Positions 1-44,087 of a stretch of 64,000 bases of DNA are shown here, piece after piece (position 1 is the first letter of the stretch; every line of letters starts with the position of its first letter). This DNA comes from Blepharisma stoltei ATCC 30299 (Eukaryota; Protista; Ciliophora). The notes below the pieces were generated by a model. That model was not told where the DNA came from, made no database searches, and saw only the letters and a program-made list of their open reading frames with translations. Both the position numbers and the translations under genes were made by a program. Location: assembly GCA_965603825.1 (NCBI GenBank), contig CBFDEM010000022.1:62001-126000 (forward strand), given 5' to 3'.

Positions 1-2839
1 ATCACTATTACGCAAATCTAATGCAATTTTCATATATTGCTTTGCGTAGATCTGCCAAAGGGCATCCTCCGCTTTTTCTCTAACATCAATATCATCAGCA
101 GTATCAAGTTTCTTGTACTCATGAATGATAAAACAAGCTTTTTTATATTTAGTAGGGATGAAAATCCCATCAGCCTTCTTTCTAAATCTATTTGGTGCTT
201 CGGAATGTAATGTATAATTTGAATCTTCTGTCATAATTGAGGCCAGCATCGCCATTCCTCCTAGTAAGATTTGAAAGTCTGCCTCTGTTTTACTAGTGTT
301 ATCTGTCATCTGATCAAGGACCATTGATTGCATTAGATTCTTGAATTCGGTTTTATCATCTAAGGTGATGTTAAATTTCTCAACTATCTTACCAATATCA
401 ACTTTTCCTAAGCCTATTTTTCTGTTAATTCACTTTAAAAGCAGTGAGTTGTAAAAACTCTTTTTTATTTCTCTATTAGGGACTACATATATTCAAGCGC
501 TCACAATGTTTTCCTTTTCCTTTTTAGTTATGTTATATGGTGTTAAATAGCCAAAATGTAGCAATAGCGAGAAAAATTTTTTTGTGCTGTTGAAATCTAA
601 TGGCAAATCTATATAGGAATCAATTTCTTCTCTTAATTCAAGATAGCCATTTTTCATTATTTCAAACAATTGATCATAAGATTCTAGGGAATTAAATGCT
701 GAGACCAGTGGATTAAGGTTATTAGTAAAGATTCAATAAGGCTTGAGAGGATTTCTATCTTGAGATTTTGCTTTTTCTATGCAATTTATTATTGAATGGG
801 GATTGTAAATTCTTTGTCCACTGATATTGTATCCGTTGCATCACAACTTAATTAATTCTTTTTGCTCTAATATTTCCTCATCTGTGTTACTCTCCAAGTT
901 TCGTTCGATTAGAGTATTTATCTCTGATTCTGTGAAGCCAAAAAATTGGGAGTATTCTATATTATTAACAGTATATGTATTAAAGCTGTTTATTCATGAA
1001 AACTGTGTCCCTCTAATAGGTAAAATGCCTACCAAAATCACTTTAAAAACAAAATCAGGTGTTTGTGCGCATATTCGGGCCAGGATATCTTCTATTATTA
1101 TTAGTAATCCATTTTGGTATGGAGTATTTATGAAACGACTAAAAGGGCTATCATAATCATCCACAATAATTATTGCATTCTTCTTGTAAAATTTATGTGT
1201 CAATAATATTTTCAAGAACTTTTATGCTTTTATTTTTATAATTTATTACTACATCTGGATTTTCTGAAAGATAATTTTTGATAACTTGGTCCAAGGATTC
1301 CCGATACTGTTGGTGATATTCCAAGTATGCGTCTTTGATTATATCTAAAACTGCACTCTGGTAATATTCCTCTACAGACTCATTTTCAAATATTTTTCTT
1401 ATATTGGAAAATCTTAATAAAATTGTTGGAATTTTCCCAGCATAGTTTTTGTAATAATAACCATTTTTTTCAGTTATTATTTTTAAACATTTTGTTTTGT
1501 CCAGGTTATCAACATAAATGTTATCTTTTCCACCAGTGAACAAGTACAAATTTTTAAAATTCCCAGAAGCATCCTTTCTTGGATGGAAAAAAGTTTTTAG
1601 CATGTTTATATTTAGAGTTTTCCCCCATTTTTGCGGACGGAAGATTAATATATTGGTATGACCATTATCTAAAATTTCTTTGATGAGTAATGATTTATCA
1701 ATATAGCCATCTTTATTCCTAACTGCCTTTTTAAAGCTACCGGAATCAGTAAACCATTTCCCACCAGATCTAGCCCTCATGATTGCTTGATTTGTTTGAG
1801 GTGTTAAACTTTTAATTTGCGGTAGGCGATGTGGTGTAGTAAATGTATCATCAATTTTAAATTTAAGATATCATGAAGAGCCTTTATTTTTTATTGTTCT
1901 AATCAAATTTATCGCCTCTCCTCATAAATCTGATTGCTTATACTCTCAAAGAGTGCAAAGTTGGTGGATTATTAAATTTTTTTGGATGAATTCCATTTCT
2001 TTTTCAAGCGCTTCCCAGGCTGAGATTTCATCAATCAATGCACAAATGATTTCCTTATTTACAATTTCAATCTCATTTGAGCTATAATTCGGCTGAGGAA
2101 GAGGGACATTTGGACTCTTGTCTAATTCGATGCTATGCACACCTAGAATATCTCTCAGCTTTAAACTAAAGGATGGGCAAAAACCACGAAAGGGCTCTAA
2201 AAACTCCGTGCTTCCGCTTGAGATCAGCATAATTGCGTTGAAAACAGACCATAATCCGCTTTCATGAGGATGCTCATGAAGCTTAAGACTTATTTCTTCA
2301 ATATTTACATTAGGAAAGAAGCCTCCAAATTTCAAGGTAGGGCCATTCTCTCCAGAATTCCTAATCTTGATTTCTTTTTGTATCAAATATTTCATAAGTT
2401 TCGGTATTTGCAAACCTAACCCGAAAGAGTCTATTAAAAATACAGTTTCTGAAGCTCTTTCGAGAACATCTCCATGAATAAGTGTGTGATTTTTTGGAAG
2501 AATCACCATCATCTGCCATAATGAATTTGATTCTGAAACTTGGCTGAGGATTTTTGATTCTCAAAATGTAACAAGCGGCTTTAGAAGAGCAAATCTATCG
2601 CTCTCAAGTGATTGACTTATAGCTGAGATATAAAATAAGACACCTGATGTTTCATCTTCGAAGGCGGGAGATTTTCCATTTGAAATATCAGGGCCTATTA
2701 TATGAATTCGATCGCCATAAATCAGTTGCAAAGCTTCTTTTATGCCATAAGCAGTTGAGCTAGGAACTGTAGAGCAAGATTCTGGCCACTCTGGGAGGTC
2801 CAAGAAGAATTTGTACAAATTGGCTTCCATATCAGTCAT
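1..2839 (-). pseudogene. CE-like + AAA-ATPase-like + PD-(D/E)XK gene, copy 1; frameshifted by a ~107-110 bp deletion at ~1195; runs off window start
   Basis: ORFs 2561-2839, 1946-2512 and 1193-1780 are one frame joined by TGA=Trp. Motifs YIDKS and RPQKWGKT are present. TAA at 1193 arises at the deletion junction; IIVDDYD, FGFTESE and IHEYKK continue in another frame. Confidence 0.85.
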
Positions 2840-3119
2840 TATTTTATTAAAAGGGGCTATTGGGTTTTTATATTTTCCTTAATTATTTTATGTATTAATT
2901 TTAGAAATAAATATAGAGGCTCTCAAAGTTGTAAAAAAAGGCATCTTCATTGCTTACAAGGTCTGCAGAGCTGCTAATAACTTTGATTTCTAGTCTATGC
3001 TTCTTGATCAGTTTGAGTTTTCAATATATTAATGAATTTGATGAGTCCAAAATTTTTGGAAATGTGATCATTTTTGGGCGCTTTTAAAAAAGTTAATAGA
3101 TCAGAAAGCTACTATTTTG

Positions 3120-3654: not shown

Positions 3655-6600
3655 TTATTTATCGTATAATTTTGGCTTTTTGCCTAGTTCAATTTCATCA
3701 TAGTCAAGCTTGCGTTTCATCACTAAGCCTTCTTCTCCTTCAATGTAACCATAACTATCGCCACCAATATTTTTGATAAGATCGCCAATTCTTTCTGCAC
3801 CGAGAGATCTTCTTTCTTCAATTTTTTCATTTTGAGACCCACTTTCTCCACATAATTTGGCTGATGCAGCCAATATTCCCCCGCTGGCTGAACTAAATTT
3901 TGTATTTATAATGGAAGCAAGATTGAAGTCGAAAGAATGCTCTTTAATCAGCATACTTCATTTATAACTATATTGAGCTTTAAAGAAAACAATACCACGG
4001 ACTATCATTTTGTCAAAATAATTGTAATGCTGATCACTATCACGCAAATCTAACGCAATTTTCATATACTGCTTCGCATAGATCTGCCAAAGGGCATCCT
4101 CCGCTTTTTCTTTAACATAATTAGCATCAGCAGTATCAAGTTTCTTGTATTCATGAATGATAACACTAGTTTTTTTATATTTAGTAGGTATGAAAATCCC
4201 ATCAGTCTTCTTTCTAAATATATTTGGTGCTTCGGAATGTAATGTATAATTTGCATCTTCTGTCATAATTGAGGCCATCATCGCTATTCCTCCTAGTGAG
4301 ATTTGAAAGTCTGCCTCTGTTTTACTAGTGTAATCGGTCATCTTATCAAGAATCATTGATTGGATAAGATTTTTGAATTCAGTTTTATCATCTAAGGTGG
4401 CGTTAAACTTCTCAACAATCCTACCAACATCAACTTTTCCTAAGCCTATTTTTCTTTTAATTCACTCTAAAAGCAGTGAGTTGTAAAAACTCTTTTTTAT
4501 TTCTCTATTAGGGACTACATAGATTCAAGTGCTCGCAAGGTTTTCCTTTTCCTTTTTAGTTGCTCTATATGGTGTTAAATAGCCAGCATGCAGCAATAGT
4601 GCGAAAAAAATATTTGTACTGTTTAAATCTAATGCCAAATTTATATAGTTATAAATTTCTTCTGATAATTCAAGATAACCAGTTTTCATTAATTCAAACA
4701 ATTTATCATAAGATTGCAGGGCATTAAATGCTGAGGCCAGTTGATTAAGGTCATTAGTAAAGATTCAATAAGACTGGAGAGGATTGCTATCTTGAGATTT
4801 TGCTTTTTTTAAACAACTCATTATTGAGAATGGATTGTAAATTTTTTCTCCACTAATATTGTATCCGTTGTATCACAGCTTAATTAATTCTCTTTGCTCT
4901 AACATTTCCTCCTCTGTATTACTCTGGAAGTTTCGCTCTATTAGAGTATTTACCTCTGATTCTGTGAAGCCAAAAAATTGGGAGTATTCTATATTTTTGA
5001 TTGTAAACGTATTATATTTGTTCATATATGAAAATTCTATCCCTTTAATAGGTAAAATGCCTACCATAATTACTTTCAAAACAAAACTAGGTAAATCTGT
5101 TCATATTGAGTTCAGAATATTTTCTATTATTTCTAATGCTTCATTATGGTGAGGAGCATTTATTGCACGACTAAAAGGGGCATCATAATCATCCACAATA
5201 ATAATTACGTTCTGCTTGTAAAATTTATGAGCAAATTTAGCAAGATTAGGCACAGCTTCTGATAGCATTTCTAATGAACTATTATTATCTTTGCAATCTC
5301 TAAACTCTTGAATATGCAATGGTAAAGTTATTTTATATGCATCGATTATACTTTCAAGCTCTAATATGTTTGTATTATCATAATCTATCACAATATTTGG
5401 ATGCTTTGAAACATAATTTTTGATAACCTCATCCAATAATGTGCAATACTCTGGGTAATATTTCGAGTATGCTTTTTTGATTATTTTTGAAAATTCAGTG
5501 AGGTAAAATTCATTCACAGGGTTATTGCCTAATTTTTTTATTTTGGAGAATTTTAGAAAAATTGTTGGAATTTTCCCAGCAAAATTTTTGTAATAATCGC
5601 CATTATCTTCTGTTATTATTTTTAAACATTTTGTTTTATCCAAGTTGTTAACATCAATGTTATCTTTTCCACCAGTGAACAAGTACAAATTTTTAAAATT
5701 CCCAAAAGCATCCTTTTTTGGGTGGAAAAAAGCTTTTAGCATGTTCATATTTAGAGTTTTACCCCATTTTTGCGGACGTAAGATGAGTATATTGGTGTCA
5801 TCATTAATTAAAATTTCTTTGATGAGTAATGATTTATCAATATAACAATCTTTATTCATAACTACCTTTTTAAAGCTTTCGGAATTAGATAACCATTTAC
5901 CATGAGATTTAGCCCTCATGATTGATTGATGTGTTGGAGGTGTTAAACTTTTAATTTCTGGTATGCGATATGGTGTGCTAAATATATCATCAGATTGAAA
6001 TTTTTTATGTAATTCTTCCAGAGGAGCTTTTATTCTTCTCATAAAATTTTGCGCCTCTACTCATGAGCCTGATTGCTTATATTCCCAAAGAGTGCAAAGT
6101 TTATTGATATTTAAATATCTTTGGATGTATACCATTTCTTGTTCAAACACTCCCCAGTGTAAGATTTCATCAATCAATGCATTCCTGATTCCCTCATTCA
6201 CAAAATCAAGATCACTTGAGCTATAATACAGCTGAGGAAGATCATTTGGACTCTTGCCTAATTCGATATTATGCTCATCTAGAATAGCACTCAGCTTTAA
6301 ACTAAAGCATGGGTCAAATTTACTAAAGGGCTCTAAAAACTCCGTGCTTCCGCTTGATATCAGCATAATTGCATTGAAAATAGACCACACTCCACTTTCA
6401 TGAGGATACACATGAAGCTTAAGACTTTTTTCTTCAATATTTACATTAGGAAAGAAGCCTCCACATTTCAAGGTAGGGCCTTTCTCTCTAATCACGATTT
6501 GTGTTTGTATCAAATATTTCATAAGTTTCGGTAGTTGCAAACCTAGCCCGAACGAGTCTATTAAAAAGACAGTTTCTGAAGCTCTTTGGAGAGCTTTTCC

Positions 6601-9326: not shown

Positions 9327-9865
9327 AATTCAAAATTGTAATAAATTGATGAATTTGGTCAACTGTGAGGTGAGGCTTGTCCTTGATAAATTCCACAATT
9401 TTTTAAAACCATCAGGTTTGCCTGTTAGCAAAAAGTAAAAAGTTTGTAAAAGCTTCTTCGTTTCCTTCATTTTCTTTTTCTCAGAGTTCTTTTACAGCTT
9501 TATCTAAATCATATGTATTGTAAGTGTATCGATTATCATAGAAAGGCTTGTCCTCGTCGAGGATTTTTTTAATCATCTTAATTTTTGATAAAAAGGATTA
9601 GGATTTTTTTGAGAAGTTCATTAACTTGGAATGTAGTAGACAATGAAAGGTGAGAACATTTTTTATCGAGAAGAGCACGAACTACCTGAGGCAGATGAGA
9701 ATTGATAAATGTATGAGATTGGTCTGAAGACATGAGATTTTGATCAAATTCAGAAATTTGTGACTCAACTTCGATTAATGATAATTGCAAATCAAGATCG
9801 TCACGATTCAGATTAGCGCGGAGGTCTGCGTAGGAGATTCTATAATCTTGTTTGGCTTCTGACAT
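9327..9865 (-). pseudogene. 5' fragment of the USP gene (mirror of 26788-27406)
   Basis: First ~90 aa identical to ORF 26788, followed by two internal deletions, a TAA stop and truncation. Confidence 0.9.
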
Positions 9866-10052
9866 TTTATATAAAGGAATGAATATTCTGTCTTTATTAG
9901 ATGGTATTTAAGTGGTAAAATGTTTTATATAAATATGATAGAATTTTTAAATAGTTATTCTTGTGGATCTAAGGCAGAATATTATTATATTTTCAATATT
10001 TCAATAAAAACATAGATAAATACATAATCCTATTAAGAAAATTTATAGAAAT

Positions 10053-15978: not shown

Positions 15979-16399
15979 CCAATAAGCCTGGCTCTTCATT
16001 TAATTTATACATTTATTAAATTTTTATATATTGTGAAATCTTTGTTTCTTGTATGTTTACATTTTTTAATCAATAAAAAATTTAATAAATAGTGAAAGGA
16101 CGAAATAGAAATTATTTTAGATATTTTTTATATAAAAGTCAATTTCAATATATTTATTTTAAATATAAACATTTTTATCATGAAGTAATAAGTATTTCAG
16201 ATTATTGATAATATAATGTTTCCTATCAATTTAAGTTGATATTTTATTTGAAATTTTATCTATTCTTAATAATTTTAAAGCATCATTATCTCCCTTACTG
16301 ATTCAATAATTTCATAAATATTGAACACATTTAAACTAGTATAAATAAATTATTAAATTTATTAAAGAAAAACAATTACTGATTATAAAAATTAATCAA

Positions 16400-17242
16400 A
16401 TGGCAAATCCGTTCAATGGGCCTCCATTCTTTCCAAATTCCATGGGCTGCCAGTTTCCTGGAACTCTAAATGCAGGGCAATCTAATGGAAACTCCAACGC
16501 ATTTCAAGGCCAAAAAATTATGAACGCTATTATGCTTCAGGGGAAACTAATGCAGCAAATTGCTGAACAGAATGAAAATTTGCACAACAAGCTAGCAGAT
16601 ATTAGAAGAGAAATTGAAAATTTGCAAGTTCCAGGGCTTCCTTCAGACCCACAAAGTGGCATTGTCCCTTCAAAACAGAACCTTCTGGACCTTCTAACCG
16701 GAGAAGACACAAAATTTGATTTTTCTCTTGAACTGTCAGGTTCAGTACCCAACCCAGTCTGTAAAGGAAAATATTTTTCAATAAAAGTTTTCCTCGAGCC
16801 AGTTGGGGAGGAGAGAATTCCTATTGAAGAAAGAATCCAATTAGGGGTCTCCTTATATACAGCAGAAAATCCACCAAAACTCATTAACCATAATATGTCT
16901 GGTGGAGGTATGATAAAAGGTCATAGTACCAGTTGGCTGACTTATGACGAAAACGAGCGAAAACACGCTACATCGTTTAAAATTCAGCTTAATGAGGTTA
17001 CGTCACATTTTCGAAATGGATGGGTTTTCCTTGTTGTGCAGCCTCAGACACCTTGTGAGTATTTAGAGCAGTCGGGGTATAAGCTGAAGCCTTTAATTGT
17101 AAAGCATTTAGTTATCAAGGCAAAAGAAACGACTTGCAAGAGGTGGAGGGAAAAAGGAAAAGTTAGCAATATTTTGCCTGAAGCAACTGAAGATGCGTCT
17201 CAGGGCTCTCATGAATCGTCTGAAGAGTCAGAAGAAAATTAA
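16400..17242 (+). CDS. Hypothetical protein, 280 aa (short coiled coil + beta-rich domain + acidic tail)
   Basis: Clean ATG-TAA ORF, higher GC than flanks. Confidence 0.8.
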   Translation: MANPFNGPPFFPNSMGCQFPGTLNAGQSNGNSNAFQGQKIMNAIMLQGKLMQQIAEQNENLHNKLADIRREIENLQVPGLPSDPQSGIVPSKQNLLDLLTGEDTKFDFSLELSGSVPNPVCKGKYFSIKVFLEPVGEERIPIEERIQLGVSLYTAENPPKLINHNMSGGGMIKGHSTSWLTYDENERKHATSFKIQLNEVTSHFRNGWVFLVVQPQTPCEYLEQSGYKLKPLIVKHLVIKAKETTCKRWREKGKVSNILPEATEDASQGSHESSEESEEN

Positions 17243-17516
17243 ATTTTATTACCAATAAATATAAATGACGATTTTTCTTAAATTTGTGATTCAGGAATTA
17301 CTCATATTTTTGCATACTCCTAAATATAGCACCAATTTTATTAAAATCTGGCAATTTTTGTCTATGACAGCAAATAATTTCTATTATAATTCTTAACAAT
17401 TATTTTCTGACTTAAAGACAAAATAAAATTAATATTCAAATTCATTTATTGACGCTGTTGATTTTATTTTAAGCCTTCCATGAAATTATGAATTTCAGTA
17501 TAGTGGTTATATAAAT

Positions 17517-18464
17517 ATGAGTAGATCAAATCAGATTGAGCTGATGGGCAAGAGCATTATTTTGCAAGATTCGCTGTCACTTCATGAATTTAGTCTACTC
17601 AGCCAACTTAGGAAAACACCAACTGTCAAAACTCTTCTAATTCGTAAAAATGACACTCGAGAACTCCTTATAATGAGAATGATTAAGAAACGATCAAAAA
17701 TTTCTGTGCCTCTATTAAGAATCCAACAAGAAATTCAGCATCCTTTTATCTGTCCTGTAAAATACACCTTTGAAAACTCAAAGAGAAAGTATTATGTATT
17801 TGATTGCTTTCAAACATGTGGCGAATTGATAAACTGGTCTAATAATAGGCTTTTTGATGAAGAAACAGTAAAGTTTTATTCTGCGTGCATTTTATTAGCA
17901 GTTTTACATTATCATCAAAATAGCATTGCTTATCTCAAGTAAAAATTATTTAGTCTAAATCTTGAAAATGTATTGGTTGATTCCCAAGGGTATGCAAAAT
18001 TAATAAGCCGTGAAGCTTGTGGAGAAATTGACAATGGAGAAATTTCTGAGTTTTTAGCACCTGAAGTGATATTTAAAGAAAAATTTGGATTTTCCGCTGA
18101 CGTGTGATCACTGGGAGCTTTTATATATAAAATGCTAGTTGGGTCACGAATTTATTCTAAAAATCAATTATTAGAAAAAGTAGATCTAGAGCAATTAAAA
18201 TTCCCATCAAATATTTCATATGAAGCTAAAAATTTAGTAGAAGCATTACTTATTAAAAATCCAAGCCAAAGATTAAGCGAACAAGAAATTAAAAATCATC
18301 CATGGTTTGCGAATATTGATTGGGAAAGATTAGAGTCTAAAGAAATAGAGTCCCCAACGTTGATAAGGGGAGAAATCTCACAGAGAATTCCGCTGGAATC
18401 TAATTATCAGACACAATCAGCAAGAATATTTCAAGCCCAAGATCCGATTATAAATACAATTTAA
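17517..18464 (+). CDS. AGC-family kinase-like protein, probable pseudokinase; intron 17939-17953
   Basis: HPFI, FYSACILLA, LENVLVD, FLAPEV, DV(TGA)SLG, HPWFANIDW. The catalytic loop reads YLNLNLEN and the DFG position reads SRE. Confidence 0.85.
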
Positions 18465-18648
18465 TTTCTTTAAATATCATCCCTAACTATGAAGATTCTA
18501 TTTAGTTTTAAATATATTTAACCCTTCTTATAGAGATGCTTTTCCTGCATTAAGTCTCTCAAATAGCCTAAAATTTCAGACAATTTCTTTCTTGCTTATT
18601 TAACTCAAATTTTAAACTAAAATATTATCCTGTATAAATCTCATAAAA

Positions 18649-19074
18649 TTATTTATTTAAAATCCTTAATCTAAGCCTTCTTATCATGGCATCAATTTTA
18701 CCCCAAGTTTCTTCCATAAGAATTAGTAATGCTGAAATTAATCCAATATTCGATAAAGACATTTGAAATATTCATTCTTCAGAAGCGTAAAATGGGTTAT
18801 AGATTGACCAAGTTGATAATGAAAGCAGGAATAATAAAATACAGCTGACTTCTTCGAATTTTAATAGGAGCAAAATTGTTGATAAGAGGATAGACCCACC
18901 GTATAGTCTTACTGCCGTTGTTGCGTCTGGATAAAAAGAAGTGTGGGAAAAGTAATGATTTAGACCGGCCTTTCATTCAGTAGTATAGTGTTCAGGGTTT
19001 GTAAGCATTCTTGAACCTAAAACTAAGAGGATTGCTGCTAGGAGCAATTTTCCCGCTAATTTTCTAGTTCCCAT
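18649..19074 (-). CDS. Small multi-pass membrane protein, 141 aa (missed by ORF track)
   Basis: ATG at 19074 to TAA at 18649, open with two TGA=Trp; about four hydrophobic segments. Confidence 0.7.
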
Positions 19075-19510
19075 TTATTATTTGTAAATAAATCTGTCAA
19101 AATAAATATTAAATCGCGTAAAGTTATTTAAAATTAAGCTTAATAAATGATTTGCTACATTATAGATAATATTCCTTTTATTTTTCAAGTTAAAAAGTGT
19201 ATTATTATTTTTTAATAGAAAATAAGGAATCTTCTTTAAATATTGAATAGTCATGCTCCTTTTTGTGCTGATTTTTAACAAAAAATTGATTTGGAAGAGC
19301 AATAAACTCAAAAAATACATTCAAAAAAATCAATAAGAAAAAAGGATTTAAAAGGAAATTTGCAGATTCAGCTCATGGAATAATATTGCTAAGCATTAAT
19401 ATTGCCATTTACAAATTAATCTCAGTTATTGTATTACTGCATGAAATTGATCAAATCTCGAACACACTTAATCAATTAAAAATTTGATTTAAATATAAAT
19501 ATAGCAATTT

Positions 19511-19960
19511 TTACTTTTGAACTTGACCTTTATATTCAAGCTCCTCGAAAATTTTAAGTCTTCTTTTAGCACTATCATCATTCCCTTTCTTAAAAACAAG
19601 CTTCTGGGTATTTAGATTTATTTTTAAGTTTGAAGGGGAAAACTCTCGGTGTTTGAACTGGCATCGAGTTCCATAAAGGCAATACCCTAGCTCATAAAAT
19701 TGCTTACATTTTTTCGTTCTGTAATTGTTCGGAAGAGTGGTTTTCTCTCGAAGCTCATGAATCCCATGAGCAAATGCGCATGAATCCCCAAATTCGCACT
19801 TACCATTCTCCCAATTTCGGCACATTTCGGTTTTATATTTAATTGTAAAATCTACTTCTTTCGTGTTTTCTACTATATCTGTTGGCATCTGAATAAGTGT
19901 ATTTTTACTGTTTTGGCCTAGCCAAGGATTGCATGTTATCCCGATGTGAAACTCCTGCAT
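19511..19960 (-). CDS. Tandem CCCH zinc-finger protein (TTP/ZFP36-like)
   Basis: KYKTEMC-x8-C-x5-C-x3-H and YRTKKC-x8-C-x5-C-x3-H; ATG at 19960. Confidence 0.9.
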   Translation of the reverse strand: MQEFHIGITCNPWLGQNSKNTLIQMPTDIVENTKEVDFTIKYKTEMCRNWENGKCEFGDSCAFAHGIHELREKTTLPNNYRTKKCKQFYELGYCLYGTRCQFKHREFSPSNLKINLNTQKLVFKKGNDDSAKRRLKIFEELEYKGQVQK

Positions 19961-20287
19961 TCTGATTGACAAATTTTTATTATATAAAAATTGTTTTATA
20001 TCAGAAAGAAATTTGACAATGAAAATACAGGAATATGTATAAGAAATCAAATAGAAAAGAAAATTATTTTACTATTAGTGATATATATATTTTAGCTTAA
20101 GATTATGGGGGTGCCAATTGAGATTTATTTTTTTAAAAATAAAATAGTTCACAAATATGATTGATAAGATTTATGTGATTGGGATTTCAAAGTAGTCTAT
20201 GGTTATTTGTGTTTTAGCAAGTTTCTTGGAAAAAGGAAAACGGATATAATTTGTTGTATAAAAATGCACTTTTTGTATATAGATTAA

Positions 20288-23200
20288 TTAAAATAAATAT
20301 ATTGAAAATGACTTTTATACAAAAAATATCTAAAATAATTCTATGTCGTCCTTTCACTATTTATTGGATTTTTGTTGATTTAAAATGCTAGTATGCAAGA
20401 AACAGTGATTGTACAATATATAGAAATTATGAATGGCACAAGTATTTAATAAATATATAAATTAAATAATGAGCTTGATTTATTGGTTATTCATTTCTTG
20501 AAGCCTCACTATACATTTTTCTAAGTTCATCTAGTTCATTTTGAAGCTCATAGTTAGTTTCTTCTAAAAAATTAATTTGGTTTTCATAATAATTTTTGGT
20601 ATTCGGCCCTTGTGCTTTTAGCTGATACTTGAGATCTTCAATCAAACTTGTATATTCAACAGTCTTTTTTCTCATCATCTCATTTTGCGTATTTGCATCA
20701 TTTAACTCACTTTTTAGCTTCTCAAAGCTTCCAATTTGATTTTGATAATCCGATAATTCTTTTTCTAAGCCAGAAATCCTATCTAAAAGTGCTTGATTTT
20801 CTTGATTATTAATCTCAATCTCTCTAATTTTACTTTTTAGGTCAATATTATCAATTAAACTCTCTTTTAATCTTTCTTTTATATTCTAAATAACCAATAC
20901 ATTTAATTCTGCATGAGTGCTATCTAAGTCTATGGTTTTCCTAGAGACTTCTTCTTTAAGCTTTGATATTTCTTCTTCATTTCCTGGTAAAACATCTGAA
21001 GAATTTTTTATTGCATTAAATTCTTCCAATAGTATTTCATATTCAGCCTACATTATAATTACTTCGATTTTTTCATAATTTTGAATAATATAAGAATTTT
21101 CATTTTTCAATGAATCATATGAATCCCTTGTCTTTTCTAGTTCTGAACTCAGATTGTTTATGATGTCATTCTTTTCATCTATATCTAGTTTTGCTTTATC
21201 AAGCTGTGTTGCTAAGTCTTCGATTTTAGCATTTAAGATGGAAAATTCTTTATCTATTTCTCCTAGGCTTGCTTGATTGAGAGAATTATTTATTTCATCT
21301 TCAAGATTTTGGATTTTTTCATTTAATTTTTCAATATTTTCTTCTAAATCCATATTAGTATTTAGCAATTTGTCGTACTCTTCTAATAAATTATGATGCT
21401 CTAATTCAATTCTTTGACTCTCTTCTTCAAGCCTTATAATTTTCAAATCTCTACCCTTTATTTCTGCTGAATACTTATCAGAAATTTCTTTTATTTTCGT
21501 TTCGTATTTTTCATCAATAGTTTTAATAATTTCTTCATACTCAAGAATTTCCATATCTTTTCTTTGGATTTCTTCAACGTATTGAGCTATTAAATCACCA
21601 TTTGCATTTAGTTCTTGAATCCTGGCTTGAAGCTGATAATTCAAATCTTGAATTATTTCATTTTTTTTCTCTATTTCTACTTCCTTTGAATTTAATACAT
21701 TTTTTGAATCCTCAATGAGATTGTTTAAGGATTTAATTTTGTCATTGTATGTTTCTTTTATATAGTTAATTTCATTATCCTTTTTCACTATTTCTTCATT
21801 TAATCCTTGATTTTCCTTTTCAATAATTAATAGCTTGCTTTCTAAATTTTTGTTGTCTAATAATAGGCTTCCATGTCTATTAATTTGAGAATTTAGCTCA
21901 TTTGCTGTTTCCTTTAGTTTTAAATAGTCCTCAATAACTGATTCATTTTCTTGTCTAGCTTGAAGGAGTTGCTGGCCTAAATCATTGATTTTTGAGTTGA
22001 GATCTGATTTTTCCTCGTCGTTCTGCTTAATAAGTTCTAATTTTTCATTTTGCAATGATTGATACTTTAGATCTGAATCCAATTTTTCTCTATTTAAGAG
22101 CTCTATGGCTTCTTTATCTTCTTCTATTTTTTGCGATAAAATTTCATTTTTTCTCTTATATTCTTCAAAAGTTGATGTGATATTTTCAAAATTTTCTAAT
22201 TCTTTATTTTTAGCAGCAATATCTTTCAATAAATTTTTATTATTATTTTCCAAATCAGAAATATCTTTAGCCAATAATTTCTCCTTTTCAGAGTTTTTTA
22301 ATTGTTCTCTACTGTATGTTAATTTAAGTTCGTCAAGCTCTCTAGTTAACTCTAATTTTTTATTTTTCAGATATTCATAATCTTCTTTTAGCTTTTCACT
22401 TATTCCATCGTTTTCCTTTTGGTTTTTTGCTTCAAAGGCCAATTTTTCTTTTTCTCTTTTTAATAAAACATTTTGTATTTCCAGTTCTTTATTTTTTTTT
22501 TCGAGTCATAATTGTTCTTCTCTTAAATCCTCAACTGAGAGAGTTAATTCTTCTATTTTTGAATTCAAATTATCATTGATTTCGCGTAATTCTTCTAGAT
22601 CTTTTAATTTCTCATCTTTAAGTGTATTTTCATTCTTTAATAATTCAATTTCTTCAAATAATAATTTATTATTTCCAATAGCATCTTCATTTTTTTTGAT
22701 TTCGCTTTCTTTTTTATTTAATTGGTCTATCAGCATTTCATGCTTTTCTTGCCATATTGATTTTTGTATATTTATTTCATTTTCTTTTTCAGTTATTTCT
22801 ACTTGCTTAGAGTCAATTAACGCTTGAAGAGACTGCTTTTCATTAATTAAGTCATTGAGTTTCTCATTCAAGTCTTCATTATTTTTAACTGAAGCATTGT
22901 AACACTCTTCTAAAGATTGATACTCTCTTTCCAATTTTTCTTTGCTGTTTTTAAGATCTGACAGATAATCTTGATTTTGTAAATCTTTTGTGAGATCCTG
23001 GATCTTAATCTCCATTTCTTCCTTTGACTTGCTTAAATCTAAAATGTTTGCTTTTAGATTTTCAATCTTTTTCTTTTTCTTTTCAAGCTTTGACATTAAT
23101 TTTTGGCTATTTTCTTCTTTAAGCAGTAGAGAATTATAATTGTCTTGCAGAATTTGCAAGTACCGAAGGTTTTCGTTGAATTTATTTTGAAGTTCTGATA

Positions 23201-26200
23201 TATTTGTATCATACTCGTTATCTTTCATTTCCGATTCAGTAATAATACGCTTGAGATTTTCCTTCAATTCAGAAATTTCATTTTCTAAGGAAGAAATATT
23301 TTGCTTTTGAGTGTCTATAAGCTTATTTGTTGATGCTTTATAGAGTTCATGCTTTTTTTCTAAATCAAGTCTTATCTGATCAGTGATATCTGCTTCGCCC
23401 TTATATTTTTCTAGCTCTAATTTAAGCTGAGAAAGCTTATCATTTAGTATACAATTTTTATTTGCTATTTCATCAATAGTAGATTGACTTTGATTATATT
23501 TGTCAATATATGTTTTAAGATCCTGATCTTTAGTCTCACATTCTTCAGTTAAATTTGAAATTTTATCATTCATTTTCAATTTTAGGTCTTCCATCAGCTC
23601 AATAATTTTCAGACTTTCATTGTATTTTTTAACAGACTCCTCCAATTTTTCCTTTGTTTCTTGCAATTCTCTATTAATTCTACTTTTATCCTCCTCTCTC
23701 TCCTTACTCAACTTTTCTTCAATAATTCCATATGGCATCAAATCATGTTCTTGGTCCTTTTGGTCCTCAATTAAAGCTTCAATATCATTCTCTAGCTCAA
23801 AAATTTTGTCCTCTTTGGCTTTAATTTCTGCTTGAAAATTATTCCGGTTAATCTCAATTTGTTTATTTAAGTCTGATATTATTGCATCCTTACTTTGTAT
23901 TTCTTTCAAAAAGTTATTCGATAATTTTTCAACAGTGACTTTTAGCTTTTCAATATCTTCTTTTGCCTGAATATAGTTGCTTTCTTTATTTTTCCAATTT
24001 AAATTTTCATATAAAAGATCTGAGTTTTGTTTTTCTAGATCTTTAACCATGTCTTTATATTTTTTGAGTTTTGTTGCTAATTTTTCTTCATTTGATTTAT
24101 ATCTTGATAAAGAATCTTGGAGCTCTTCGTTTAGATTGATAAGTCCTCCTAGTTTAACTTCAAGCTCCTTATTCAATTTTGCTCGATTTTCAAGTTCTTC
24201 TTTAGCCGCTTCTAATTTTTCTAATGAATTTTTATATAATTTTTCTAAACTTTTTATCTTTTCTTTATCATCTTGGATTTCAAATTTAATTTTTAAGGAC
24301 TGAGCTTCTTCCAGGGAAATTTTCAATCTGCTTATTTCATTTAAAAGAGAGTCATTTTTATAAGATAATTCCTTAATTTCCATATCATCTTTGTCAATTT
24401 CATTATTCAGGCTTATGATTTTTTTTATCATTTTATTCACAGCCAATGCTAAATCATCTAAACCTCCGTCTATAGTGTGACCAATTTCAATTTCTTCATA
24501 ATTCAATATTTTTTCTATAATCATTTCTATTTTATTTTCGACTGTTTTTGATTTTTCACATTCTGTTAAGAATTCATTCCTCAAGTCGTCAATAGCCTCT
24601 TTCAAATTACTATTTTCTTCTGATTGCTTTTTAAGCTGAGATTGTAATGATTCATTTTTTTTAGTCAGGTCTCCTATGCTATTGATGCTTGCTTTGCTAT
24701 CATATTGAATATTTTTTAATTGTGTTGTGAGGTTTTTGTTTTTAGATGTTTCTTCTGCTAGTTTATTATTTAATTCGCTCAATTCTTTTCTTAATCCCTC
24801 GTTTGCAATTATTTTTGATTCAAGTTCACTGTTTTGATCTTTAATTTTCTGTTTTATGGATTGGTTTTCATTTAAAAGATTCCTAGCCTGCTTAATATCA
24901 GCTTCTAATTCTTTTATATTTTCTCTCAAATTTGAATTTTCTTGAGCAAAACGCTTATTTTCTATTTCGAGTGTTTTAAGTTTTTGATTCAATGGATAAA
25001 GCTCAGTTTCAGTACGCAGCCTTATATTTTCATAGCTATTTATCTGCTCTATAAGTTTAATTTTATAATTTTCAAGACTTTGAACTTCTTTTATATAGCG
25101 TCTTATTATTAGATCTTTGGATTCTAAGTCATCTTTAAGTCTCTTAATATCAGCTTCATTTGCTGCAATATCACTTAGAGCTTGATTGAAATTTTGCCAA
25201 TAATCATCATTTTTCTTTTGCAATTCTTTTTTACTTTGATTTGAAGAGTGAAGATCTCTATTTAATTTTTCGATTTCTTCTCTTAATTCCTTAATCAGCC
25301 TTTCATATCTGTTTTTCTCTGACTTTGACTCATTTAAGAGTCTATCATAATTTATCTTGGAGGTAAGATATAAATTGGAATTGCTTTCTGATCCTGCTAA
25401 TTTTAGTTTTAAATCAATTATTTCTGATCGTAAGTCTTCATTTTTCTTTGATAGCTGGCTATTGCACTCTTCAAGATTATGACTTTTCTCTTGCAATTCA
25501 TTTATTACTGATGATGCCTTAGATAAGTTATTTTCAAGAGTCCCAATATTTGGTATTTGGCTGTTTTCTTTTATTTCTTTTTGCAATTTTTCAATTTTTC
25601 TTTTATAATTATTCTCACTATTAATAAGTTGCCTTTTGCCTTCGGTTAAAGCAGCTAACTCTTGCTTCAAATCTTTTATTTCTTTTTTTAGCATATCGTT
25701 ATTACTTCTTTCATTTTCTAATTCAGATTTACGCCAAATGTTTGACTTTTCAACTGATTGATTGCTCAAATTTTGAATTTTTTCTTTTAATCTATTATTT
25801 TCTCTTTCTAAGGCCAAGTTTGAGGTTTCCAAGTCTCTATATATTTTTTCAATTGTTTCCGTTTTTGATTCAACATTATTTCTATTTGGACTTCTAGACA
25901 AGCGCTGCTCATTTCGAGATTTTATGATATCATTTTCTTTTTGTAATTCTGCGCATCTATTCTTAAGTTCTACTGCACGATCTCAATAATCTTTCATGGT
26001 GGACTCTTGTGAGTTTAAAATTGCCTCTTTTTGCTCTAGTATCTGCTTTAACTCATTAATTTCTTCCTGATACTTGTTCTCTAGGCTGTGCTTCAGTTCA
26101 TTGATCTTTTTTTGATACTTTTCAATGATTTTATTCTCAAAAGCTTCTTCATTGCCCCTATTGTTAGGATTCTACATAAATATCACCTTATAATTTGCAT

Positions 26201-27406
26201 TATTCATCATCTCATTCAATTTTTGCTGTAAAATTCTTTCATTACTCTTCATTGCTCTAATTTTTTCCAAAATTATTGAGGGCATGCTTTCCAATTTAGT
26301 TTTATTTGGCGCAAATCCATTCAATTCATTTATAATTTTTGTAAGCTCGCTTTCAAATCACATAGTTTCTACATTTTTCAAAGTTTGATCGGACCTTGGA
26401 GTGAGATTTTGCCCTAATAATTGATCTTCATCACCTGAATGGCCATAACTGGCTATCCTTGCATTATCATTGAATTTATCTCTACTTGGTGAATATGTTT
26501 TGTAAGTACATAAGTTTTGCAAATCGTTGCTCAGGTGCTTCTTGGATCGATTTTTAGAATTTTGAGTGCCCGGTGAGCTGAGTTTGGAAGAATGCTGCAT
26601 ATTTTTATAAATTTTCTAAATATGATTATGCATTTATCTATATTTTATTGAAATACTGAAAATATAATAATATTCTGCCTTAAATACACAAGAATAACTA
26701 TTTTAAAAATTCTATCATATTTATATAAAACATTTTACCACTTAAATACCATCTAATAAAGACAGAATATTCATTCCTTTATATAAAATGTCAGAAGCCA
26801 AACAAGATTATAGAATCTCCTACGCAGACCTCCGTGCTAATCTGAATCGTGACGATCTTGATTTGCAATTATCATTAATCGAAGTTGAGTCACAAATTTC
26901 TGAATTTGATCAAAATCTCATGTCTTCAGACCAATCTCATACATTTATCAATTCTCATCTGCCTCAGGTAGTTCGTGCTCTTCTCGATAAAAAATGTTCT
27001 CACCTTTCATTGTCTACTACATTCCAAGTTAATGAACTTCTCAAAAAAATCCTAATCCTTTCTATCCAAACATTAAAAGCTGAGCAATTCGGCACTATCG
27101 AGATGATTAAAAAAATCCTTGACGAGGACAAGCCATTCTATGATAATCGATACACTTATAATACATATGATTTAGATAAAACTGTAAAAGAACTCTGAGA
27201 AAAAGAAAATGAAGGAAACGAAGAAGCTTTTAAAAACTTTTTACTTTTTGCTAACAGGCAAACCCATACAACACACAATATTCTTTTTAAATACAATTTA
27301 AGTGTATTTATAAGATATGAAGGGTTTAAAAAAGTTGTGGAATTTATCAAGGACAAGCCTCACCCCACAGTTGACCAAATTCATCAATTTATTACAATTT
27401 TGAATT
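20288..27406. repeat. Right arm of inverted duplication (left arm ~9327-16165)
   Basis: Reverse-complement match to the left arm. Confidence 0.93.
20487..26600 (-). CDS. Large coiled-coil protein, ~2022 aa; introns 26172-26186, 21048-21062, 20886-20900
   Basis: Four ORF pieces share one frame, linked by TGA=Trp and three stop-containing 15-nt GT-AG introns. E/K/L/N-rich heptad composition. Confidence 0.85.
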
Positions 27407-36318: not shown

Positions 36319-39300
36319 ATGGAAGCCAGTTTGCACCAATACTTCTTGGACTTCCGAGCGTGGCCAGAATCTCGCTCTACAGTTCCTAGCTCAACTGCTT
36401 ATGGCATAAAAGAAGCTTTGAAACTGATTTATGGCGATCGAATTCATATAATAGGCCCTGATATTTCAAATGGAAAATCTCCCGCCTTTGAAGATGAAAC
36501 ATCAGGTGTCTTATTTTACATCTTAGCTATAAATCGGTCACTTATGAGTGATAGATTTGCTCTTTTAAAGCCACTTGTTGCATTTTGGGAATCAAAAATC
36601 CTCAGCCAAGCTTCAGAATCAAATTCATTATGGCAGATGATGGTGATTCTTCCCAAAAATCACACACTTATTGATGGGAAAGCTCTCCAAAGAGCTTCAG
36701 AAACTGTCTTTTTAATAGACTCGTTCGGGCTAGGTTTGCAACTACCGAAACTTATGAAATATTTGATACAAACACAAATCGTGATTAGAGAGAAAGGCCC
36801 TACCTTGAAATGTGGAGGTTTCTTTCCTAATGTAAATATTGAAGAAAAAAGTCTTAAGCTTCATGAGCATCCTCATGAAAGTGGAGTGTGGTCTGTTTTC
36901 AATGCAATTATGCTGATTTCAAGCGGAAGCACTGAGTTTTTAGAGCCCTTTAGTAAATTTGACTCATGCTTTAGTTTAAAGCTGAGTGCTATTCTAGATG
37001 AGCATAATATCGAATTAGGCAAGAGTCCAAATGATCTTCCTCAGCTGTATTATAGCTCAAGTGATCTTGAGTTTGTGAATGAGGGAATTAGGAATGCATT
37101 GATTGATGAAATCTCACACTGGGGAGTGCTTGAAAAAGAAATGGTATACATCCAAAGATATTTAAGTATCAATAAACTTTGCACTCTTTGAGAGTATAAG
37201 CAATCAGGCTCATGAGTAGAGGCGCAAAATTTCATGAGAAGAATAAAAGCTCCTCTGGAAGAATTACATAAAACATTTCAATCTGATGATATATTTACCA
37301 CACCAGATCGCCTACCACAAATTAAAAGTTTAACACCTCCAACACATCAAACAATCATGAGGGGTAAATCTGATTGCATTTGGTTTACTGATGCCGAAAA
37401 TTTTAAAATGGCAGTTAGGAATAAAGATGGTTATATTGATAAATCATTACTCATCAAAGCAATTTTAAATAAAGGTGCCATTAAAATACTCATCTTACGT
37501 CCGCAACAATGGGGTAAAACTCTAAATATGAGCATGTTAAAAACCTTTTTCCACCCAAAAAAGGATGCTTTTGGGAATTTTAAAAATTTGTACTTGTTCA
37601 CTGGTGGAAAAGATAACATTGATGTTAACAACTTGGACAAAACAAAATGCTTAAAAATAATAACTGAAAATAATGGTTATTATTACAAAAACTTTGCTGG
37701 GAAAATTCCAACGATTTTTCTAAAATTTTCCCTAATAGAAACATTGGGCAATGAGCCTGTGAAGGAATTTTACCGCAGTGAATTTTCAAAAATAATCAAA
37801 TTAGCATACTCGAAATATTACCCAGAGTATTGCACATCCTTGGACCAAGCTATCAAAAATTATGTTTCAAAGCATCCAGATATTGTAATAGATTATAATA
37901 ATAAATGCATACCAGAGCTTGAAAATATTATTGACACATATAAAATAACTTTATTACCGCACGTTCAATTGTTTAGAGATTTCAAAGATGATAATTCATT
38001 AGAAATGCTTTCAAAAGCTGTTCCTAATCTTGCTAGATTTGCTCATAAATTTTACGAGCAGAATGTAATTGTTATTGTGGATGATTACGATACCCCTTTT
38101 AGTCGTGCACTAAATGCTCCTTACCAAAATGAAGCATTAGCAATTATAGAAAAAATTCTGAACTCAATATGAAAAAATATTCCTAGTTGTGTTTTGAAAG
38201 TAATTATGGTAGGTGTTTTACCTATTAAAGGGATAAAATTTTCAGAAATAAACACCTTTAATACACATACAGTTAAAAATGTGGAATACTCCCAATTTTT
38301 TGGCTTCACAGAATCAGAGGTAAGTACTCTTATTGAGCAAAATTTGGAGAGTAACACAGCTGAGGAAATGTTAGAGCAAAAAGAATTAATTAAGCTGTGA
38401 TATAATGGATACAATATTAATGGACAAAAAATTTACAATCCATTCTCAATAATAAGCTGTATAGCACAAGCAATGTCTCATGAAAGCAATCCTCTCCAGC
38501 CTTATTGAATCTTTAATAATAACCTTAGTCAACTGGTCTCAGCATTTAATGCCCTGCGATCTTATGATAAATTGTTTGAAATAATGAAAACTGGCTATCT
38601 TGAATTATTAGAAGAAATTGATAACTATATAAATTTGTCATTAGATTTAAAAAGTCCAAAAATTTTTTTCGCACTATTGCTGCATGCTGGCTATTTAACA
38701 CCATATAGCACAACTGAAAAGGAAAAAAAAAACCTTGTGAAAAAATGAATATATGTCGTTCCTAATAGAGAAATAAAAAAGAGTTTTTACAACTCACTGC
38801 TTTTAGAGTGAATTGACAGAAAAATAGGCTCAGGAAAAGTTGATATAGTTGAGATAATTGAAAAGTTTAACACCACCTTAGATGATAAAACTGAATTCAA
38901 AAATTTTATCCAAACAATGATTCTTGATAAGATGACTGATTGCACTAGTAAAACAGAGGCCGACTTTCAAATCTTATTAGGAGGAATGGCGATGTTGGCT
39001 TCAATTATGACAGAAGATGCAAATTATGCATTACATTCCGAAGCACCAAATAGATTTAGAAAGAAGGCTGATGGGATTTTCATCCCTACTAAATATAAAA
39101 AGGCTAGTGTTATTATTCATGAATACAAGAAACTTGATACTGCTGATGCAATTGATGTTAGAGAAAAAGCGGAAGATGCCCTTTGGCAGATCTATGCAAA
39201 GCAGTATATGAAAATTGCGTTAGATTTGTGTGATAGTGATCAGCATTATAATTATTTTGACAAAATGATAATCCGTGGTATTGTTTTCTACAAAGCTAAA

Positions 39301-39609: not shown

Positions 39610-40010
39610 GATAAGTAATTTTTAATTACATGTGAAATATTTTTGTTTTGATTAAATCTCCTTAAGTAAATACTTCAGCAGCGCGCTATGTATCTTTAAT
39701 AAATACAGATTTTAATTACCATATCTTTTCATACTCATTTTCATTATAAGCAGAAATCATAATTGATAGGTGCTCCCGAAGATTTGTGCAAGTTGATAAT
39801 ACTTTCATAAGCATTTTCCTGCTCTATTGCTCTATCAAGCCCGCTAGGAAAATTTTCCAATGTATTATAAAATACATGTAAGCGATCAAAAAAATAATTT
39901 TCTAACACAAGAGGTTAATAAGCGAGCTTTAAGGAGATCCTTTCCTATAGCAAAGCATTCAGCAAAACATAAAGAAGCAATGCTTTTAAAGGCTTAATAA
40001 AAATCATATT
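39610..40010. repeat. 3' flank of copy 4, directly repeated at ~43165-43510 after copy 5
   Basis: Shared AAGTAAATACTTCAGCAGCGCGCT...GATCCTTTCCTATAGCAAA blocks. Confidence 0.85.
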
Positions 40011-40119
40011 GAAAAACAGAGACATTTTCTGACGCGAGTATACTCTTAAAAAGCCACTTGTTGCGTTTTGGGAATCAAAAATCCTCAGCCAAGCTTCAGA
40101 ATCAAATTCATTATGGCAG

Positions 40120-43100
40120 ATGATGGTGATTCTTCCAAAAAATCACACACTTATTGATGGAAAAGCTCTCGAAAGAGCAGCAGAAACTGTATTTTTAATA
40201 GACTCTTTTGGGTTAGATTTGCAAATACCGAAACTTATGAAATATTTGATACAAAGAGAAATCGAGATTAGGATTTCTGGAGAGAATAGCGCTCGTTTGA
40301 AATTTGGAGGCTTCTTTCCTAATGTAAATATTGATGAAAGAAGTCTTAAGCTTCATGAGTATCCTTATGAAAGTGGGCTGTGGACTGTTTTCAATACAAT
40401 TATGTTGATTTCAAGCGGAAACAATGAGTTTTTAGTGCCCTTTAGTAAGTTTAACCCATGCTTTAGTTTAAAGCTGGGAGCTATTCTAGACGTACATAAT
40501 ATCAAATTAGACAAGAGTCCAAATGGCCCTCTTCCTCATCTGAATTATAAGTCAAATGAGATTGAATTTGTGAATAAGGGAATCAGTAGTTCATTGATTC
40601 ATGAACTGTCAGACTGGGAAGTGCTTGAAAAAGAAATGGAATTCATCCAAAATCATTTAAATATCCAACAACTTTGCACTGTTTGAGATTATAAGCAATC
40701 AAACTTATGAGGAGAGGCCAAAAATTTTGTTAGAAGAATAAAAGCTCTTCTGGAAAATATAGACTCTTCATGATGTCTTAGATTTAAATTTGATGATATA
40801 TTTATCACACCACATCGCCTACCACAAATTAAAAGTTTAACACCTCCAACGCATCAATCAATCATGAAGGGTAATTCTGGTGGTAATTGCATAATTAATA
40901 CTGATCACTTTAAAGAGGCAGTTATGAATAAAGATTGCTATATTGATAAATCATTACTCATCAAAGAAATTTTAACTAGTAGCGCCCCAAATATACTCAT
41001 CTTACGTCCGCAAAAATGGGGGAAAACACTAAATATGAGCATGCTAAAAGCTTTTTTCCACCCAAGAAATACTTTTGGGAATTTTAAAAATTTGTACTTG
41101 TTCACTGGTGGAAAAGATAACATTGATGTAAACAACTTGGACAAAACAAAATGCTTAAAAATAATAACTGAAAATGATGGTTATTATTACAAAAAGTTTG
41201 CTGGGAAAATTCCAACGATTTTTCTAAAATTCTCCAAAATAAAAGAAAAATTGGACAATGAGCCCGTAGAGGAATATTACCGCAGAGCAATTTCATATAT
41301 AATCAAAGACGCATACTTAGAATATTACCCAGAGTATTGCACATCCTTGGACGAAGCTATCAAAAATTATAGCGCTTTCCCGAGGATGGCGCGGAATGGC
41401 GCCATCCTCGGGAAAGCGCTATATGTTTCAAAGCAGCCAGATATTGTGATAAATTATAATAATACATCCATATTAGAGCTTGAAAATATTATTGACGCAT
41501 ATAAAATACCTTTGCCGTTGCATGTTCAATTGTTTAGAGATTACAAAGAAGATAAGCCATCAGTTATACTATCAGATGCTGTGCCGAATCTGGCTAGATT
41601 TGCTCATATATTTTACAAGCAGAAGGTAATTATTATTGTGGACGATTATGATACCCCTTTTAGTCTTATATTAAATGCTCCTTACCAAAATGATGCATTA
41701 AGAATAATAGATAATATTATGACATCAATATGCACAGATAGACCTCCTTATGTTTTGAAAGTGATTTTGACAGGCATTTTACCTATTAAAGGGATAAGAC
41801 TTTCATGAATAAGAAGCTTTGAATTATATACAGTTAAAAAGGCAAAATACTCCCAGTTTTTTGGCTTTACAGAATCAGAGATAAATACTCTTATTGAGAA
41901 AAACTTGGAGAGTAACACAGAGGAGGAAATGTTAGAGCAAAAAGAATTAATAAAGCTGTGATACAACGGATACAATATTAGTGGGCAAAAAATTTACAAT
42001 CCACACTCAATAATGCATTTTTTAGATGAAGTAAAATCCCGAGATAGTAATCCTCTCCAGCCTTATTGAGCCGATAATGACCTTGATTCATTGATCCCAG
42101 CATTTAATGCCCTACAATCTTATGATAAATTGTTTGAATTAATGAGAACTGGCTATCTTGAATTATCAGAAGAAATTGATAGCTATATAAATTTGCCATT
42201 AGATTTCAGCAACACAAAATTTTTTTTCGCACTATTGCTTCATGCTGGCTATTTAACACCATATGGAACAACTAAAAATGAAAAGAAAAACCTTGTGAGC
42301 ACTTGAATATATGTAGTTCCTAATAGAGAAATAAAAAAGAGTTTTTACAACTCACTGCTTTTAGAGTGAATTAACAGAAAAATAGGCTCAGGAAAAGTTG
42401 ATATTGGCAAGATAGTAGAGAATTTTAACACCACCTTAGATAATAAAACTGAATTCAAAAATCTTATCCAATCAATGATTCTTGATAAGATGATCGATTG
42501 CACTAGTAAAACAGAGGCAGACTTTCAAATCTTACTAGGAGGAATAGCAATGCTTGCCTCAATTATGAGAGAAGATGCAAATTATACATTGCATTCCGAA
42601 GCACCAAATATATTTAGAAAGAAGGCTGATGGGATTTTCATCCCTACTAAAGATAAAAAAACTAGTGTTATAATTCATGAATACAAGAAAATTGATACTG
42701 CTAATATTAAGAATATTAGAGATAAAGAAGAGGATGCCCTTTGGCAGATCTATGCAAAGCAGTATATGAAAATTGCGCTAGATTTGCGTGATAGTGATCC
42801 GCATTATAATTATTTTGATAAAATGATAATCCGTGGTATTATTTTCTACAAATCTCATTTTGGTTATAAATGAAATATGGTTATTAAAGAGCACTCTTTC
42901 GACTTCAATATTGCTTTAAGGATAAATAGTGTTTTTACTTCAGATGAGGGGGGAATTTTGGCTGTATCAGCCAAATTATGTGGAGAAAGTGGGTCTCAAA
43001 ATGAAAAAATTGAAGAAAGAAGATCTTTTGGTGCAGAAAGAATTGATGATCTGATCAAAAATATTAGTGGCGATGATTATAGTTACATTGGAGAAGAAGG

Positions 43101-43161
43101 ATTAGAGATGAAAATCAAACTTGACCCTCCAAGCAAAAAGCCAAAATTGCAGGATAATTAA
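40120..43161 (+). CDS. AAA-nuclease family copy 5, N-terminally truncated, 1013 aa including an 18-aa insert from a palindromic element
   Basis: Homology starts near 40045 (LKKPLVAFW); first ATG at 40120; frame open to TAA at 43161 with TGA=Trp. Confidence 0.8.
41368..41423. mobile_element. TA-bounded perfect palindrome (25-bp arms, 6-nt loop), IES/MITE-like insertion
   Basis: TATAGCGCTTTCCCGAGGATGGCGC-GGAATG-GCGCCATCCTCGGGAAAGCGCTATA. Paralogs read AAAAAT-TAT-GTTTCA without the 54 bp. Confidence 0.88.
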
Positions 43162-43692
43162 GTTTTCTTATAGGTGAAATAATTTTTGTTCTGATTAAAT
43201 TCCTAAGTAAATACTTCAGCAGCGCGCTGTGTATCTTTAATAAATATAGATTTAATTACCATATCTGTTTATACTCATTTTCATTATAAGTAGAAATCAT
43301 AATTGATAGGTTCCTGAAGATTTGGTAAGTTGATAATGCTTTCATAAGCATTTTTCTGCTCAAGCCTGCTAGGAAAATTTTCCAACGTATTATAAAATAC
43401 ATGTAAAATAATTTTAGAGCACAAGAGGTTAATAGGCGAACTTTAAGTAGATCCTTTCCTATAGCAAAACATTTGGCAAAGCATAAAAAAACACAAAGTT
43501 TTTTAAAGCTTACATGATTGCTAGGATTTCTGAATTACTAAAGCTAGTAAGCAAATTATTGATGGAGTTGCTGCTGGATTTATTGCTGATATTGTTGATA
43601 AAATTAGTGATGGATATTTGCTTGAAAATTTGTTGTTGTGTCTGGAATTTAGAATTAAAAGCAACTAAACGCGGATTTATCGCTTTAAAAGA

Positions 43693-43748
43693 TATAGTAA
43701 TTGCCCGAGGATGGCGCAAGATAGCGCCATCCTCGGGCAATTACTATA
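43693..43748. mobile_element. Second member of the TA-bounded 56-bp palindrome family
   Basis: TATAGTAATTGCCCGAGGATGGCGC-AAGATA-GCGCCATCCTCGGGCAATTACTATA; same length, same ends and same 14-bp inner stem as 41368-41423. Confidence 0.82.
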
Positions 43749-43831
43749 TAATATATCAGATATTCCGTTTCAATCCTTTATCATCCAGGCAGGAAGATTT
43801 ATAGGCTGGTTTGCTAAGGTAGAACTAATAT

Positions 43832-43875
43832 GACTGTTTGGCCGAGTGGTCTAAGGCGGTAGCTTAAGGCGCTAT

Positions 43876-43906
<31 letters not shown>

Positions 43907-43911
43907 AGTCA
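43832..43911 (+). tRNA. tRNA-Leu(AAG)
   Basis: Acceptor GACTGTT/AGCAGTC-A, A-box TGGCCGAGTGG, anticodon arm GTAGC-TTAAGGC-GCTAT, variable arm, GTTCAAATCC T-loop, downstream T-runs. Confidence 0.95.
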
Positions 43912-44087
43912 TTTCTTTTATTTAAATTTCTTTAACGATTTAAATTAAACTAAATCAATTTAAATAATTTTTCAAGCAGATTTTTATTTAAAAACTCTTT
44001 TCTTTTTTTCCTTTATTACTTAAAAATAATTATATACTAAATATCAGAAACTCCTAAATCAAAACTCTGAATTGAGCATTAAGTGTA

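Follow-up and report, generated by a model that had tools for sequence, protein, structure and literature searches.

Palindromic IESs of about 228 bp have been described in Blepharisma stoltei by Seah et al. 2023 (PMC9942856), who suggested rnd-1_family-160 and rnd-1_family-87 as MITIES. The published IES lengths peak at 225–231 bp, the 228-bp peak holds 41% of the palindromic IESs, and the shortest published class measures 64–66 bp. In Blepharisma stoltei, whose published MAC assembly has 41 Mb and reads UGA as Trp, 70% of the true IESs are intragenic. The same work (PMC9942856) presents BogoMITE, a non-autonomous Pogo/Tigger MITE-IES of 389 bp. In Paramecium, IESs have been lost by conversion to MAC-destined sequence, the example being TA mutation, for non-coding IESs (Sellis et al. 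2021, PMC8354472).

The window, by which we mean the whole stretch of 64,000 nucleotides of Blepharisma stoltei DNA analysed here, contains at 41368–41423 a short hairpin that acts like a TA-targeting MITE and has its origin among the palindromic IESs reported by Seah et al. 2023 (PMC9942856). It shares with them the TA ends, an end motif near TAT Agn nnT TT and the palindromy, and a parental element found at another locus (L093) is a precise 228-bp IES. The published IESs are germline-limited, whereas the short derivative has 53–54 bp, stands in the somatic assembly and is depleted from genes. BogoMITEs at locus L086 likewise end in a hairpin of about 45–55 nt, built from the terminal repeat and an inner copy of it; they differ in their TAA/TTA duplication, in an unrelated terminal repeat and in being excised. 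The short hairpin has neither that duplication nor the Bogo terminal repeat. Hairpins of 45–55 nt terminate both BogoMITEs and a second, different repeat family at L086 (3303–3687, 6431–6479 and 16648–16696), and Blepharisma MITE-IESs may have the terminal hairpin as a common design. As in the Paramecium cases, an IES has turned into permanent somatic DNA, but here both TAs are intact, one large internal deletion is involved, the event recurs across a family and some copies are exonic. We conclude that the hairpin is probably a somatically retained deletion derivative of the mobile palindromic IES family of about 228 bp.

A hairpin scan of the window bore out the perfect TA-bounded palindrome described in the first-pass annotation, with arms of 25 nt and a loop of 6 nt (Table 1). 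The 64 kb contain only three perfect hairpins with arms of at least 11 nt: the present one, another member of its family (43692–43749) and an AT-rich one with 11-nt arms. The insertion consists of a 52-bp body and one duplicated TA, 54 bp in all, and thereby carries the TA-containing terminal direct repeat that is a criterion for Blepharisma IESs. Five paralogs are empty at this site, lacking exactly 54 bp and keeping a single TA (three in the window and two on G000 C62), and removal of the 54 bp indeed leaves one TA and restores the paralog sequence, as had been claimed. With TGA read as Trp, 39973–43158 form an open frame of 1062 codons in which the insert has phase 0; this confirms the addition of 18 amino acids without a stop. 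The possibility of an assembly artefact, named at the outset as the case that would overturn the insertion, was rejected: a DNA contig of run X1 (41394–42145) passes from the hairpin interior into the flank with 0 differences at a depth of 71, the neighbouring unique X1 contigs having depths of 63–73. Nine identical copies of the hairpin occur, on nine contigs.

Table 1. Coordinates of the hairpin insertion, its host gene and related features in the window
Feature	Positions	Strand	Remarks
Subfamily-A mini-element including both TA copies	41368..41423	.	Arm 41368-41392, loop 41393-41398, arm 41399-41423
Left TA direct repeat	41368..41369	+	One TA in empty paralog sites
Right TA direct repeat	41422..41423	+	TAT fits here too
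Second family member, subfamily B, 56 nt	43693..43748	.	Core CCCGAGGATGGCGC in common; outside long ORFs
GCTAT direct repeats bounding the 62-nt skip	41356..41422	+	Repeats 41356-41360 and 41418-41422; run X8
Host gene, AAA-ATPase_like protein, apparently transcribed	40120..43161	+	~1013 aa from first Met, TGA = Trp
Empty site, adjacent paralog	37855..37872	+	TA 37861-37862; KNYVSK; 85% identical over 300 nt, closest paralog
Empty site, further paralog	5409..5421	-	TA 5415-5414
Empty site, frameshifted paralog	1267..1279	-	TA 1273-1272

The host gene had been labelled a nuclease. Pfam assigns its product to AAA-ATPase_like (PF09820, E 2e-19) and detects no nuclease domain; the sole basis of the label is a PD-(D/E)XK-like motif discernible by eye. 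The 18 additional residues fall between a Walker A-like and a Walker B-like motif. Contigs of the RNA-like run X8 cover most of 40937–43008 with 0 differences. One RNA-like contig of this run skips 62 nt between the GCTAT repeats flanking the hairpin. Intron removal was rejected as its cause, because GT-AG ends are missing in every register and the reading frame is shifted. Reverse transcriptases are documented to switch template where GC-rich structure coincides with microhomology (PMC2927423), and the skip is probably such an artefact, implying a transcript that contains the hairpin; a single run, presumed to be RNA, underlies this reading. Elsewhere in the window, 9583–27070 form a very large inverted duplication with arms of several kb, 93–99% complementary, around a centre of about 4.7 kb.

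A search with the shared core CCCGAGGATGGCGC identified at least 44 dispersed hairpins of 53–56 nt in the somatic assembly (41.46 Mb, 64 contigs). Counting both TAs, 37 of the 44 measure 56 nt, six 55 nt and one 53 nt, which corresponds to insertions of 51–54 bp, nearly all of them 53–54 bp. They fall into three subfamilies: A, with the element at 41368–41423; B, with most copies, including the one at 43693–43748; and C, with 55 nt. The target sites show a weak A-TA-T preference only. The pattern TATAGnnnTT fits 64 of the 88 element ends, and subfamily A fits it fully; these ends are close to the published end motif of the 153/174-bp IES classes (TAT Agn nnT TT). There are 20 different end pairs among the 44 copies, identical asymmetric end pairs recur at two to three unlinked loci in subfamily B, and the arms are imperfect in 23 of 37 retained copies. 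Terminal inverted repeats, a TA duplication with matching empty sites, short length and dispersed multicopy occurrence are all features of TA-targeting MITEs of the Tc1/mariner type. The somatic assembly contains no long element with these ends that could be a candidate for an autonomous partner. The exact core-hairpin pattern had 0 matches in metagenome and prokaryotic genome collections, and a protein search with the inserted peptide gave no candidates.

The second hairpin in the window lies 2.3 kb from the first, in phase 0 of an apparent decayed ORF remnant (43450–43800, minus strand). A tRNA-Leu gene (43831–43912) follows at 82 bp; a tRNA was found at only 1 of the 44 element loci, which offers no link between the family and tRNA genes. 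In two paralogs 25 kb apart on G000 C4, with flanks only 65% identical, a subfamily-A element (L002:1504–1559) and a subfamily-B element (L030:1490–1545) stand in frame at one and the same homologous Tyr codon, a coincidence that could stem from two independent insertions or from a replacement. Run X12 comes from a strain or species further removed, with about 97% likeness in unique sequence. At 90% likeness its contigs leave the flanks uncovered. It holds full-ended subfamily-B hairpins together with long parents and little signal of subfamily A.

The hairpin at 41368–41423 is kept in the somatic genome and does not behave as an excised IES. Elimination from the soma, which defines an IES, is contradicted by the 44 somatic copies, by the contig at full depth, and by the lack of any 54-bp excision joint in the contigs of the three DNA runs X1, X5 and X12, a check on assembled sequence from which rare variants are dropped, so that excision at a few percent would escape it. 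Contigs of X1 and X5 run unbroken from flank to arm across the TA at both elements of the window. With 51–54 bp the insertions also lie below the published length classes (at least 64 bp). Five other element loci could be reached through annotated neighbouring proteins in the MAC+IES assembly (GCA_914767885.1), and at each of them the same short hairpin stands in both the somatic and the MAC+IES sequence; IESs close to these five sites are present in the MAC+IES assembly and absent from the somatic one. No nested IES was found within the hairpin at the five sites. The earlier proposal of a short IES/MITE that escapes or only partly undergoes excision thus holds for the kinship with MITEs and IESs, the TA duplication and the escape, and fails for partial excision. 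The two protein isoforms expected from DNA elimination lose their basis with the missing joint and the unbroken contigs.

The position of the copies differs from that of IESs, about 70% of which are intragenic. Coding sites hold 5 of the 44 elements by score, 7 by long ORFs and 9 by a generous count, and the lowest figure compares with 218 of 528 random TA sites taken from these loci (Fisher p 4e-5). Copies are under-represented in coding DNA, as retention would lead one to expect. Among the seven copies in long ORFs, three are read through in frame (the host gene here, L002 and L003) and four create a stop (L004, L057, L063 and L066); none has the commonest open phase. This combination is not predicted by simple frame-preserving selection. 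The copies in stop phase sit in a TPR gene, an ankyrin gene, an rve integrase gene and one unknown gene, and the annotation treats the regions of L003 and L066 as pieces of larger gene families.

Three longer, germline-only relatives were found in about 145 kb of the MAC+IES assembly. One of them, L093:12796–13025, sits within a large gene; it is bounded by TA, measures 228 bp and has terminal hairpins on both sides of an inverted inner part. In the somatic sequence its two flanks meet with a TA overlap of 2 bp, which makes it a precise IES. Germline-only, TA-bounded, within 225–231 bp and palindromic, it fits the 228-bp palindromic class; its ungapped self-complementarity of 80% lies below the published cut-off of 90%, which applies to aligned sequence. 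The same plan is seen in L092:5887–6161 (275 nt) and in a truncated copy at L088:~2371–2570, both nested in larger germline-only inserts, which leaves excision at the element's own ends visible for one of the three (L093). The insert around the L088 copy (2286–3045) is GC-rich, about 760 bp long and germline-only; its two ends carry a 16-bp direct repeat, one of them also has short tandem repeats, and the whole is retroelement-like. The inner motif of the parents has 0 matches in the somatic assembly, even when one mismatch is allowed. At loose contig ends of X5 and X12 the hairpin core leads into other sequence containing CCACACGGGA, in both subfamilies A and B; a subfamily-A parent is visible as this hairpin-inner-motif junction in two contig ends, not at full length.

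Relative to the flanks, the summed depth over the window's two hairpins is about 18–24 times higher in X5 than in X1, a rough figure taken from contigs. X5 is probably a germline-enriched fraction, judging from its own size (83 versus 44–45 million letters) and from a study layout with four samples, which parallels the four gradient fractions of the germline paper. Extrapolation from the loci, which are not a random sample, gives about 1100 long copies genome-wide (230–3300). Descent of the short hairpins from the germline palindromic IES family is well supported. An origin from tRNA was dropped, the T-loop-like word of L088 not being kept in L092 or L093, and no Rfam family reached the threshold for the L088 parent. 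The difference 228 − 54 = 174 equals another published IES peak with similar ends, probably by coincidence.

Because the parent is palindromic, its terminal hairpins are also direct repeats. The product computed for a deletion between the hairpins of L093 agrees with the somatic copy L074 over all 55 nt (0 mismatches), the unequal left and right ends TATAGTGG and CCTCTATA included. A mirrored model of L088 collapses to L019, L035 and L064, a result that is partly true by construction. One deletion of about 175 bp therefore explains why the length is fixed, why the ends are intact and why asymmetric variants occur. In the proposed sequence of events, parents that are TA-bounded, missing from the somatic assembly and equipped at either end with a hairpin of about 50 bp would lose the segment between the terminal hairpins in a single deletion, possibly by slippage or single-strand annealing, which on the real parent joins the left and right ends in a hairpin of 55–56 nt. 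The short form would then be present in germline and soma alike, as was seen at the five other sites and is presumed for 41368–41423. At 53–54 bp, below the shortest published IES class, it could probably not be removed by the domesticated PiggyBac-type excisase. Retained copies would be purged from most genes, and the survivors would be intergenic, in frame (as with the 18 residues here) or in broken or redundant genes, which is consistent with the counts.

The 54-bp form might itself be a mobile MITE moved by the putative transposase of its parents, the identical subfamily-A copies being fresh insertions. Such mobility is compatible with an origin by collapse, and we consider it a serious possibility that nevertheless falls on the doubtful side. 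The nine identical A copies, the recurrence of asymmetric end pairs in subfamily B, the two intact ends and the clean TA duplication would all fit this possibility; however, identical parents would likewise yield identical collapse products, the diversity of end pairs fits repeated origin from a varied parent pool, and 52 bp may be too short for the joining of ends by a transposase. Somewhat more tentatively still, the collapsed form could be a minimal mobile MITE living under the size floor of ciliate editing, spreading in somatic DNA and adding 18-residue peptides to unrelated proteins. Rickettsia palindromic elements are bacterial palindromic repeats of about 100–150 bp that insert in frame and add peptides to unrelated proteins. 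If mobile, the 54-bp form would be their eukaryotic counterpart, a likeness in mode of action only, the in-frame copies being a small minority here.

The short length is most likely the cause of retention. The authors of the Blepharisma IES work argued that the excisase cannot act on very short loops, and their filter removed only predictions below 50 bp or with very low retention scores; an abundant excised class of 54 bp should therefore have been visible. Structure or targeting might instead be responsible, through a cruciform unusable by the excisase, the absence of an inner sequence for small RNAs or factors, or protection through its presence in the old macronucleus. The stability of the fold (RNA of 41340–41440, −58.5 kcal/mol, z −9), the absence of all inner motifs from the short form and the greater number of 24-nt small RNAs on longer IESs of Blepharisma stoltei point in this direction. 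Nevertheless, this explanation appears unlikely, given that the parents are cut although both of their ends bear these hairpins, copies whose arms are imperfect are kept as well, and 54 bp is in any case below the published length floor.

A short IES that is partly excised, leaving macronuclear copies with and without the 54 bp, is very improbable. The TA ends and the IES-like end motif would allow it, and low-level cryptic excision of somatic DNA is known in Blepharisma stoltei (median 5% of reads), but the missing joint, the unbroken contigs and the depletion from coding DNA are at odds with it, and the sole RNA skip is 62 nt long and frameshifting. Hardly any weight attaches to a collapse in the developing macronucleus from a long parent kept in the germline and fixed by random assortment: excision breaks adjoining direct repeats would favour such repair and more than 50 years of culture have left the strain virtually homozygous, but no extra ~174 bp occurs at any of the five MAC+IES sites, although the 228-bp L093 was assembled there by the identical method.

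The proposed germline collapse of a palindromic IES into a retained hairpin would be one way of losing IESs and would also place their length under selection, neither of which we found described in the literature searched. That literature likewise contained no family-wide IES loss by one deletion with intact ends, and no mention of retained short derivatives was found in the consulted parts of the Seah et al. 2023 paper (PMC9942856), its preprint and its supplement. With closely related ends that are excised in elements of 228 bp but retained in those of 53–54 bp, in at least 44 places, the family amounts to a natural paired experiment on how short a substrate the excisase can handle. It also points to a cost of MITE insertions that are made harmless by editing: with a deletion-prone architecture, silent germline cargo may become a permanent exon insertion in one step.
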